Numbered from the stretch's first letter, positions 53,923-60,549 are shown. The stretch: 64,000 bases of DNA from Bugula neritina (GCA_964035545.1 OZ037767.1:14636998-14700997), one strand, 5' to 3'. The notes: a model not told the origin generated them from the sequence alone. Numbers and translations are program-made.

Positions 53923-56900
53923 ATGAATTTCAAGTAAGGTGAGAAACAAATACCTCTGCATTTGAATACCCTGCATGAAGATCTTGTTTGGTCTCCTGTG
54001 TGCAACTTGTTTAGCTCTTGGTAAGAAACTATCACAGTCTTATATTTAGGGGGTTGCGTACTCAAATCTTAGCAGCTAAACCTTAAGATTAGTATAATAT
54101 TATTTTGTCGGTCTTCAGTAATTTTATGATTTCCCTGTAAAAGTTCCACCAGAAGATTTAGCCTGTAAGCTATTGCAAACTACTGCAGAAACACAAGAAT
54201 TTGGAGTTTTCCCCCCAGTTTAAATACTCCTTTTTTCCAATAAAAAATCAAAGATGTACCTAGCTTACCTTCACTCACTGGCATACCACGCAAATCAATA
54301 ATTATATTATCTATTGTGTTATTTGCTAAATCAATAACGTAATATTGTCTCTTATAGCCTATATTTACTTCGTTATTGTATAAACATCAACAGTTGATAG
54401 TATCACTAATACGAGAAGCAATGTTCACCATGATCAGCAACAGCGCTTTGTAAGTACCCTGTACACACACACACACACGCACACGCACACACACACACAC
54501 ACACACACACACACACACACACACACACACGTACACACACAAACACAAATTCACACACGCACACACGCACACACGCACACACGCACACACGCACACATTT
54601 TTAATTTTTGAGTTAGGCTTTGAATTTTGTTAATATCATTACCAGTACCCATTGTAGCAATAAACGAGTTAATATAGTTTTCTTTCATTAGCTTTTCTTT
54701 AACCGCAAGTCAAAATCTAAAGTTTGTTTATAAAGTGGCCATATTTCAAAATTATCTAGGTTTTTTTTTTAAAATCTATTCTTCCACAGCAAAATTTTTC
54801 AATTAGCTGATTTATGATTTGAAAATATTTTAGTCATGAACACATGCATTGGGTGTTAACAGTTGAACTAAAATTTTCTCTCACTAGTCTCAATTACTGA
54901 AAAAAGCCATTGGTAATAATTTTCAACTTTTGGACCAAGATTTTAAACTTGCGTAATAAATGTTAGAGAACAATTATAAATATCGTAATACCCTAGTAAT
55001 CTATCAAAAATAATTAAAATAAAGTATATGAAACATACAGAATAAAAATATTTACTTATTTCAAGTTTATTTATTTATTTTGCAGAATAACAAAAGTAGC
55101 ATTATGCTTCCTCATAACTTTTGCTGATGGCTATGAACAGTACCAGAGAAAGATTCCTAACGGAGACAGTGTGCCAAACCCATGCATAGCTGACCATACA
55201 TGGCATGGGGTGGGACACGCCACCCCTAATGGAGCTGGGGAGCGGAATCCTTTTGGTGCTGCCTTTAAGACAGATCTGGTTAATATGACTCACTATATTT
55301 TCCTAGCAATGTTTAGATAGCTTAAGTTTCTTATCTAAAACAGGCAATACTTTTATTGAGCTTTTGATTTGCTATTTGCTCTCAAATACCAAACACTGTT
55401 GTCGCACAGGTAATCAGAAATCCAGAACTCTAACATTTTGAACTATTTGTCATTTTGAACTCAAGAAAGTTGATACAAGTATCTTGTACTATTATTAGTA
55501 TTATAGAAGGTTTTAACTGTAGGTTTTAGTAAACTATTAACTGTAGAGCAATTGTGGGAAAACATGCATTTGTTTAAGTTTTCAATCCCTGTGAAAAACC
55601 CTGGGATTGACTGTGGTTCCACCCTGGTGGGGGGGGGGAAGAAGTTTTTACAGTTGTGACGGAGAAGCAATTATGATGGAATACTCTTCCTGATATAGGA
55701 AATGACTTAATAGTGATTCAAACTTGTAGCTTAACAGTTTACCTAAACGACTATTTTCTTATAATCACTTCTTCTTAAGAGCAGCTGTTCCATATAAGTT
55801 GGGTATGTGAGAATTGTAGGTTTTGGGTTCGAATCCCAGTGAAGACGATTATTTTATAAGAAATGTCTCAATTCAGTAGCTAACCGAAAACTTGAAGTAA
55901 AAGCAAGAACTGCATGTAAACAAGAATTGGTGCTGGAATCAATACATCTTCACCTGACCATTGTCTGTAATAACAAAAGAGTAACAGCTATTGAATATTA
56001 TTAGTAGCAATTGTTGTGTAAATCAAAGGGTTCAAATAGAAACAACAATATCAATCATCACCCACCATGGTTACCAAAAACATGATGCATGATGTTTGTA
56101 TTTCAGAGAGAGAGAAATTATGTGTTATAATAAAATATACATTGCTCAAAAAAGGCACAAACCGATGGTAAAATGTTTTTCACAAAAACAAAAATGATAA
56201 TGAAGCCTTGAAAGTTATTACTTGCTTGTAATGTAGGTATGGGATAGAGCTCTCTGTGAAGCGGATTCAGATGAAGATGGGATGACCAACGGAGAAGAGT
56301 TGGGTGACCCCAACTGTGTGTGGCAAGAAGGTAGGTGCAGATTACTCCAGTATGTCTCTTATAGTGGCATTCAGTTTAATTTACATGATCAACAACTCTA
56401 CTCAAAAATACACAATCAATCAAATATATATATATATATATATATATATGTATATATATATATATATATATATATATATATATATATATATATATATATA
56501 TATATATATATATATATATATATATATATATATATATATATATATATATATATAGTAAAATGAGTGTTTATAAAACGTTACTAGAGTGCTCTATATATTA
56601 TATTAATCAAATCTCATTTTACTTCTTCTAATATATATATATATATATATATATATATATATACATATATATATATAATTATTATGGTTATATATATATA
56701 TATATATATATATATATATATATATACATATATATATATAATTATTATGGTTATATATATATATATATATATATATAACTATAATAATTATATATATATA
56801 TATATATATATATACATATATATATATATATATATATATATATATATATATATATATATATATATATATATATATATATATATATATATATATATATATA

Positions 56901-59900: not shown

Positions 59901-60549
59901 TTGTACCTATGATTCATCTTCGATGTCACAGACAGTCTCTTTTGGAAATGAAATATCTGTAAGTTGTAATTTTAAAAGTAGTTTTGGGTTGTTCTCATGG
60001 CCCCTGTGGTGTAATGGTTAGTGTGCCTGCTTCCAAGCTGGAAGTCGTGGGTTCGAATCCCAGTGGTGGCAATTTTGTTTTACAGTAAACATCTTGTGTG
60101 AGGCATGCCTGCAAAGTCTCTTACATATAGAATACATGTGTATGAATAAAGTTTCTAAAAATATCATCTTCACAAATTTAGATAAGCTCACATTTTTATT
60201 GTACATATGTGACACTTTCACTGTGTGCAGTTCCCTTGAAGATTAAATCATCCCATATGTGAAAACTTCAAATTTTTTAATGACTAACAGTACTATAAAT
60301 AAAACTAAATAGACGACTGTTTCAAAACTAAAATTTCTCTGAAAGAAAATGGTATAATTTCAGGACGAGAAATGTTACGCCCACTTTCACTACTACCCTG
60401 CCGGTGGTGCCAGAGTGAGATGTGTGGCGGGTGAAGAAAAGAAGATTTGCCTCTCCAAACCAAGTGACAAAAACAACAGCGTTTCTTTATCATTCAACTT
60501 CATCATTCTGCTCTCTACATTTTTGCTTACAGCTACAAAATACATCTAA
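53923..60549 (+). CDS. Temptin-domain plus copper type II ascorbate-dependent monooxygenase (DBH/MOXD1-like) fusion, ~467 aa, CuM ligands substituted
   Basis: Ten in-phase exons: 53923-53933, 55086-55278, 56237-56330, 57068-57196, 57534-57716, 57957-58146, 58768-58973, 59295-59400, 59853-59958, 60364-60549. Signal peptide; temptin-type [11 protein letters not shown]...WHGVGH...RNPFG...[24 protein letters not shown]...SHPGICEP; monooxygenase [52 protein letters not shown]; hydrophobic C-terminal tail. No DOMON domain. Confidence 0.88.
54463..54597. repeat. (CA)n microsatellite
   Basis: CA run with CG interruptions. Confidence 0.95.
55824..55841 (+). repeat. tRNA-like T-arm/B-box fragment of the same SINE-like family (another copy at 8017-8032)
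   Basis: TGGGTTCGAATCCCAGTG is identical to 60048-60065; TGGGTTTGAATCCCAG occurs at 8017-8032. Confidence 0.5.
56424..57066. repeat. Long compound (TA)n microsatellite filling most of temptin-monooxygenase intron 3
   Basis: Direct inspection. Shorter (TA)n runs also occur at 22866-22905, 23142-23213, 28010-28063 and 39797-39900. Confidence 0.95.
59006..59237. repeat. 15-bp minisatellite, ~15 copies
   Basis: ATAAGCATACAT(C/A/G)TG units. Confidence 0.92.
60000..60071 (+). pseudogene. tRNA-Gly(TCC)-like pseudogene or tRNA-derived SINE head in an intron of the temptin-monooxygenase gene
   Basis: A-box TGGTGTAATGG (60007-60017), B-box GGTTCGAATCC (60050-60060), TCC at 60032-60034, followed by TTTT. 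The acceptor, anticodon and T stems carry mismatches, the D stem is all G-T pairs, and the anticodon loop is 6 nt. Confidence 0.6.

Follow-up and report, generated by a model that had tools for sequence, protein, structure and literature searches.

A ten-exon gene of the bryozoan Bugula neritina encodes a member of the temptin/DBH-like monooxygenase family in which one of the two copper sites has been lost and the other kept. The protein is probably a mononuclear copper- or ligand-binding functional pseudoenzyme, GPI-anchored at its C-terminus. It is a family member by descent and, judged by its CuM residues, it is not an active copper monooxygenase. As far as can be read from the sequence, this is a real and well-supported case of selected active-site loss. 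The gene lies at positions 53923-60549 (+ strand) of the window, that is, of the whole 64,000-nucleotide stretch analysed (14636998-14700997 of its contig, in an assembly of 216 Mb).

The reading frame of 1404 nt is open and encodes 467 aa plus the stop codon, with a predicted layout of signal peptide, temptin domain, two-part copper monooxygenase core, and GPI-like tail. An earlier note had described an intact ORF with a very short first exon, and both points hold: every acceptor is AG, every donor is GT, consecutive phases agree, and the exons contain zero internal stops. All features given here are on the + strand. Exon 1 (53923-53933) carries the start codon and the first signal-peptide residues and ends in phase 2; its shortness is backed by five paralogs that also have a phase-2 first intron. 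An alternative first exon at 53975-54020, which ends in phase 1 where the paralogs have phase 2, was discarded. Exon 2 (55086-55278) encodes the remaining signal peptide, with cleavage predicted by eye and homology before 55132, and the first half of the temptin domain. Its donor, GTTAAT, is a poor match to the consensus but sits at the phase-0 position of the paralogs. The second temptin half, with an acidic DSDEDG motif, is in exon 3 (56237-56330), and the per-exon Pfam run placed Temptin_C above the cut-off in both (E 7e-14 and 2e-14). Exon 4 (57068-57196) holds the end of the temptin region and a linker; its acceptor, also kept in a sister-lineage contig (L021), adjoins an (AT)n microsatellite.

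Exons 5-6 make up the N-terminal (CuH) and exons 7-10 the C-terminal (CuM) copper monooxygenase subdomain, and exons 5-10 line up exon by exon, in order, with intact paralogs. Exon 5 (57534-57716) opens the CuH subdomain, on the evidence of Cu2_monooxygen above the cut-off (E 6e-11) and of alignment with DBH (4ZEL) and PHM, and exon 6 (57957-58146) completes it (Cu2_monooxygen under the cut-off; paralog alignment). The CuM subdomain starts in exon 7 (58768-58973), which is single-copy in the genome and gave zero matches when searched alone against PDB sequences. It continues through exons 8 (59295-59400) and 9 (59853-59958; Cu2_monoox_C only under the cut-off, E 0.007) into exon 10 (60364-60549), which contains the final strand, a cysteine pair, the hydrophobic tail, and the stop; exons 8-10 also rest on paralog and sister-lineage alignments. 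By hydropathy the C-terminus (60466-60546) resembles a GPI signal, with small residues, a spacer, and a hydrophobic stretch that no cytosolic tail follows. Its value of 2.0 over 15 residues resembles that of intact bryozoan relatives (P0008, P0051-54). Searches and alignments, like the trees and the dN/dS counts, were all made separately per exon rather than on the joined spliced protein, and the three sequencing runs examined for junctions all behaved as genomic contigs.

The two copper sites differ sharply in their ligands. CuH ligands 1 and 2 (PHM His107 and His108) are intact as CACCAC at 57680-57685 and ligand 3 (PHM His172) as CAC at 58112-58114; the Gln170 position, two residues ahead of ligand 3, is likewise retained. 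The gene thus carries the CuH His-His...His pattern of active copper type II ascorbate-dependent monooxygenases. At CuM, His242 is replaced by Gln and His244 by Asn (codons CAAATGAAT, read as QMN, 58958-58966), and Met314 by Lys (60370-60372), whose codon AAA is two base changes away from ATG. Where the in-genome paralogs L001 and L002 have His-Met-His and Glu-Met-Cys, this gene has Gln-Met-Asn and Glu-Lys-Cys; instead of the His-x-His...Met of active DBH/PHM/TbH enzymes, Gln-Met-Asn...Lys is found in two lineages. A paralog from the bryozoan Watersipora served to set the register to human DBH and rat PHM, which for exon 5 was also set directly. The segment GVHLQMNRL aligns with intact in-genome paralogs, such as DEMCYGFMNYYP, with zero gaps and the same intron positions, so no alternative HxH or Met can be placed. 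The earlier note had read the same codons as a CuH site kept and a CuM site wholly replaced; the ungapped paralog alignments bear out both halves of that reading, and no other HxH or Met fits the CuM positions.

The replaced codons recur in other sequences. Contigs of run X1, possibly the assembly's own sample, span both CuM segments with identical codons. An orthologous copy from a sister lineage (contigs L021-L025) derives from runs SRR4020081-84 and JGI 3300002729, which we take to be B. neritina metagenomes. Its contigs span exons 4-10, exons 1-3 lying outside their coverage, and these exons are open with all splice sites kept; L021 also shares the downstream temptin neighbour with the window. 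The former-ligand codons there are CAG, (ATG), AAC, and AAG, encoding Gln, Asn, and Lys: at each of the three the third base differs from the window and the residue is the same, which excludes an assembly error. AAG at the lost Met314 codon was also found in run X2. With the X1 contigs and the independent sister lineage agreeing, the Gln, Asn, and Lys codons are confirmed and an assembly or sequencing error was rejected.

The family to which the gene belongs, the temptin/DBH-like monooxygenase hybrids of Lophotrochozoa, was described by Takahashi et al. 2009 (PMC2762978), and in Pfam the combination PF24784 + PF01082 + PF03712 is present in hundreds of proteins. The temptin fusion is therefore already known and gives no reason to assume a pheromone function. 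At the N-terminus a temptin domain stands where DOMON would be, both copper subdomains come after it, and the gene groups with the family in trees. It shares with hybrid-family members (Watersipora P0051, L001, and L002) the domain order, the lack of DOMON, introns, cysteines, the three CuH histidines, and the GPI-like tail, with identities of 38-75% per exon. It differs from them in that the three CuM ligands and the Tyr79 motif are replaced and two new cleft histidines are present. The nearest named proteins are 'DBH-like monooxygenase protein 2' of Watersipora subatra (P0051; P0008 = XP_067941873.1), and in L001 and L002 every intron position is the same. Three single-exon FastTree trees, weak as such trees are, nest the gene among intact bryozoan paralogs (support 0.93-0.95), and it is shown to have arisen among intact, GPI-tailed paralogs that form a bryozoan clade. 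Since it groups apart, with those paralogs, the CuM loss is, on this phylogeny, independent of the losses in molluscs. In the genome, the EMC Met is retained in four intact paralogs, temptin-type or related, and in about ten inspected DBH/MOXD-type loci, as is HxH wherever it was located, and a separate DBH/TbH-like gene (L009) and MOXD-like genes have intact sites; the catalytic job is therefore covered by other genes. The gene looks young, because an exon-7 search of 1.84 billion representatives gave the sister-lineage copy as its only close match. A protein search with P0051, aligned to exon 7 only, returned no full-length ortholog, and a metagenome scan for sister copies of the intact paralogs found just two unrelated loci.

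The loss is narrowly targeted. In the 240 relatives that have all six ligands, 73 exon-covered positions are at least 93% invariant, and the bryozoan gene retains 67 of these. Five of the six changed positions belong to the active site, namely the three CuM ligands and the Thr -> Asn and Tyr -> His changes in the ETTY motif; the sixth is a Gly also lost in an intact paralog. All ten core cysteines are retained. The chance of all three CuM ligands falling among the six losses is P 3e-4. The contrast between CuM (3/3 lost) and CuH (0/3 lost) has p 0.05, and three given invariant positions would be retained with probability 0.77 at the background rate. The stem branch measures 0.4-1.0 substitutions per site in the exon trees. 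Active retention of the CuH ligands is thus no more than suggestive. As in other pseudoenzymes, catalytic residues are lost with fold residues kept, and the frame is open under purifying selection.

Aligned with other temptin-monooxygenases, ligand loss proves not to be unique, and recurs in several mollusc lineages. A first survey of 214 proteins, a sample deliberately enriched by using a degenerate member as query, comprised 190 intact proteins, several truncated ones, and ~17 with true ligand replacements. One deep clade of bivalves (scallops, mussel, oysters, pearl oyster, and ark clam; support 1.0) spans all degrees of loss, up to six of six ligands. Two more clades are made up of unnamed proteins and proteins from scallops, and isolated cases occur in Mya, Plakobranchus, and a green alga. 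The mollusc examples (scallop P0041/P0170/P0171, mussel P0173, oyster P0174/P0175/P0177, pearl oyster P0176, Mya P0245, and Plakobranchus P0235) are unstudied database proteins. Like the bryozoan protein, they are full-length members of the same family, conserved across species, with copper ligands replaced. Unlike it, they have separate origins, the majority have lost CuH ligands as well or retain the Met, and those checked for a GPI-like tail (P0041 and P0175) lack one. Kinship with the bivalve ligand-less clade (P0041/P0170-P0177, support 1.0) was rejected, as that clade is separate from the bryozoan one in the tree. A whole CuH with CuM wholly gone is unique to the bryozoan gene among 277 relatives. 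Within the limits of the literature searched, no report of CuM-less DBH-like or copper-less family members was found, and repeated pseudoenzyme formation in the temptin-type branch appears to be undescribed so far.

What such a protein might do can be gauged from better-known enzymes. With DBH (4ZEL), PHM, tyramine beta-hydroxylase, and MOXD1 it shares the CuH site and, on the model of a paralog, the two-subdomain fold; unlike them, it lacks CuM and any DOMON or dimerisation domain. The closest counterpart is an engineered one, PHM H242A, which binds one copper, at CuH, and has near-zero activity (PMC12164859). With CO, H242A gives no band in FTIR. None of the PHM H-site or M-site variants exceeds about 5% activity (PMC12164859). 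In H242A, too, the CuH ligands are whole and CuM is not formed, whereas the bryozoan protein is natural, has lost all three ligands, and has gained cleft histidines. Because PHM without one CuM His loses CuM and nearly all activity, the bryozoan protein, by analogy, presumably cannot carry out the O2-dependent hydroxylation of its family.

The preferred reading, a copper- or ligand-binding pseudoenzyme, would work as follows. The protein would be secreted and, given its signal peptide and GPI-like tail, anchored at the cell surface. A single copper would be held at CuH, as in PHM H242A, facing a cleft whose walls now carry Gln, Asn, Lys, Tyr, and three His. At the surface of the cell or colony the protein might then serve for binding: it would buffer loosely held copper or hand it to copper enzymes such as the intact paralogs, and/or it might take up a small ligand in the cleft that once held the substrate. 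Since a Lys occupies the place of the metal charge, the residues point to an acidic or neutral ligand rather than an amine. In favour of this reading, patterns with CuH whole and both CuM His lost recur independently, in Plakobranchus P0235 and the green-alga protein P0032, both of which keep the Met. Against it counts the observation that in PHM crystals peptide binding requires both coppers (PMC6123673), so that substrate-like binding would require a remodelled cleft.

It is unlikely that the protein holds no metal at all and serves in structure or adhesion, with the temptin domain and the fold being what matters and the CuH histidines merely unchanged as yet, at an early stage toward the six-ligand loss of oysters. 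The locus lends this some weight: the gene heads a four-gene temptin cluster whose three other members, in tandem, are temptin-only with GPI-like tails, and the enzyme core is therefore dispensable there. The bivalve clade, moreover, displays the whole path of loss, and the retention of CuH is statistically not strong. However, a stem branch long enough to change the CuM ligands and Tyr79 changed zero CuH ligands, and adjoining CuH a His was gained rather than lost.

That gained His is one of three in the cleft that bear on whether a second metal site has been rebuilt. At 57587-57595 alignments show that the T-x-Y motif has become N-G-H, putting a new His at the PHM Tyr79 position, which is Tyr in 255 of 277 relatives and His in 1/277. 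We take PHM Tyr79 to be located in the cleft close to CuH; nothing useful was found in the literature on this residue. A second new His (AHF, 60382-60384) is at the PHM Tyr318 position, where it is found in 0/277 relatives. Both are kept in the sister lineage. The third (VHLQ, 58952-58954), at the PHM Arg240 position, is inherited: the intact paralogs L001, L002, L026, and P0051 also have it, and it is ancestral in the bryozoan clade. In PHM, Arg240, Asn316, and Tyr318 bind the substrate carboxylate and adjoin CuM (His242, His244, Met314) (PMC12164859); here these three positions are His, Tyr, and His, next to Gln, Asn, and Lys at the CuM ligand positions. The structural model used, that of the natural Watersipora paralog P0051 (pLDDT 89) standing in for the bryozoan gene, has the DBH/PHM fold (4ZEL match E 4e-26, PHM match 2e-20). 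In it, the Arg240 and Tyr318 positions fall on strands 337-345 and 421-428 and match the register of the CuM ligands. As strands and alternation are those of the CuM ligands, both histidines should face the cleft.

The earlier note had suggested a remodelled metal site from VHLQ and AHFH, and this stands only in part. The AHF His is indeed new, and the Tyr79-position His, overlooked there, is a further gain; the VHLQ His was rejected as a new ligand, being inherited from catalytically complete paralogs, and DBH (VHYYP) likewise has a His at the last-H position. It is quite unlikely that the Arg240- and Tyr318-position histidines form a second site, displaced from CuM by two residues along the sheet and perhaps bridged to the Tyr79-position His or to CuH when the protein closes, with a redox chemistry unlike that of DBH/PHM. 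The rarity of the two new histidines among relatives speaks for it, together with the strand placement in the P0051 model and the proximity of Arg240, Asn316, and Tyr318, which share one substrate carboxylate in PHM (PMC12164859). PHM can also close and bind one Cu through histidines of both subdomains (6ALA). Yet there are just two histidines on the CuM side, one of them ancestral, no Met or third soft ligand accompanies them, and the nearby Lys and Arg disfavour a cation. In PHM, a His in place of the Met still gives < 5% activity. With 87% of codons unchanged at a shallow dS of 0.22, conservation in the sister lineage is uninformative for single residues, so that selection on any individual residue is not demonstrable here.

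For the gene as a whole, selection can be measured. Between the window and the sister lineage, 362 codons give dS 0.22, dN 0.064, and dN/dS 0.29 (bootstrap CI 0.19-0.45; Fisher p 7e-9). By region, dN/dS is 0.17 (CI 0.08-0.35) in the CuM domain, 0.26 in the CuH domain, and 0.67 in linker and tail. The subdomain without its metal therefore remains constrained, and the gene is not decaying. A young or decaying pseudogene, or one under relaxed selection, is accordingly a very improbable account. It could draw on the weak exon-2 donor, the long branch, a gene known from genomic sequence, and a dN/dS above that of the neighbouring temptin gene (0.11, from few sites). Zero stops or frameshifts in two lineages, conserved splice sites, and an interval that leaves out 1 led us to reject it. 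The earlier proposal of selected loss rather than decay is upheld by these ratios and by the five of six changed invariant positions at the active site.

A role as receptor or presenter of pheromones or other chemical cues, via the temptin domain, has similarly little probability. In Aplysia, temptin belongs to the pheromone complex, and it is an attractant for Biomphalaria (cited in PMC2762978 and PMC5685644); the gene is also first in its temptin cluster. Those pheromones, however, are small, soluble, and waterborne, whereas this protein has 467 aa, an enzyme core, and a GPI-like tail that speaks against a waterborne role. In mussels, temptin has also been tied to the formation of the larval shell and to copper exposure (PMC8696127), and no literature on bryozoan temptin (Bugula) was found. 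The pheromone link drawn earlier falls away, since temptin is a generic N-terminal domain in a published family whose members mostly retain six ligands, so that it says nothing specific about this gene. Finally, that the protein is a normal monooxygenase after all, through misalignment or sequencing error, has virtually no likelihood: intact fold residues and nothing further would favour it, against ungapped alignments, X1 contigs, and an independent lineage that all give Gln, Asn, and Lys.

The surprise is limited, as this is one paralog in an expanded family and pseudoenzymes are common in such families. Nevertheless, the DBH/PHM family is regarded as strictly two-copper, and databases label all such proteins hydroxylases; the bryozoan gene and the mollusc cases indicate that the temptin-type branch has repeatedly yielded conserved non-catalytic members. 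If the second site has moved, nature would have equipped a DBH/PHM-fold enzyme with a new copper site made entirely of His and with a reaction of another kind; such a protein would put to a natural test the debate over whether PHM and DBH work by an open or a closed (binuclear) mechanism. If it is instead a natural, selected CuH-only protein, it would reveal what CuH can do alone, in binding, redox chemistry, and copper hand-off, and would bear on how the two copper sites of PHM and DBH work together.

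Directly downstream of the temptin-monooxygenase gene, and on its strand, lie three temptin-only genes in tandem (window 62535 onward; loci L005 and L006 of the same assembly, G000:C3:14699500-14709300), in which a search for monooxygenase exons found none. All three end C-terminally in a GPI-like hydrophobic tail, which in the first gene is preceded by a His/Asp-rich stretch, HDHDHDHIH, a possible metal-binding segment. A further temptin gene lies in another locus (L008:6539-6629, G000:C3 about 16373540), and the division of its exon 3 match between two frames is a frameshift or an assembly error. 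About 600 bp upstream of the main gene, and divergent to it, is a gene with a Pfam FHA domain (window 51445-53353, minus strand), which we take to resemble NIPP1/PPP1R8; the two genes may share a bidirectional promoter.

Intron 1 contains an exon-like stretch (53975-54020) that codes for a complete signal-peptide-like sequence and has a good donor in phase 1. It could serve as an alternative first exon, spliced to the AG at 55098-55099. A second stretch with a donor at its end finishes at 54450. Intron 9 carries a high-copy repeat (59998-60075; depth in the thousands) with a tRNA B-box-like motif, similar to sequence at about 55800-55840. ARAGORN found no tRNA in the intron-9 repeat, which is probably a tRNA-derived SINE. 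A long (AT)n microsatellite (56424-57067) reaches the exon-4 acceptor. Introns 5 and 7 hold minisatellites (57730-57930 and 59010-59240), of which the sister lineage has much shorter versions.

Sequencing run X1 has alleles unlike the assembly at 57604-58142, including a Met to Val variant at 57686, immediately after the CuH His-His. Runs X2 and X3, labelled as the same species, diverge by about 7-10%, which is consistent with cryptic species.

Among database relatives, a bivalve temptin-monooxygenase clade (P0041, P0170-P0177, P0269-P0297), apparently unstudied, is named DBH-, MOXD1- or TbH-like despite lacking from some up to all six of the copper ligands, and is both conserved and expressed.
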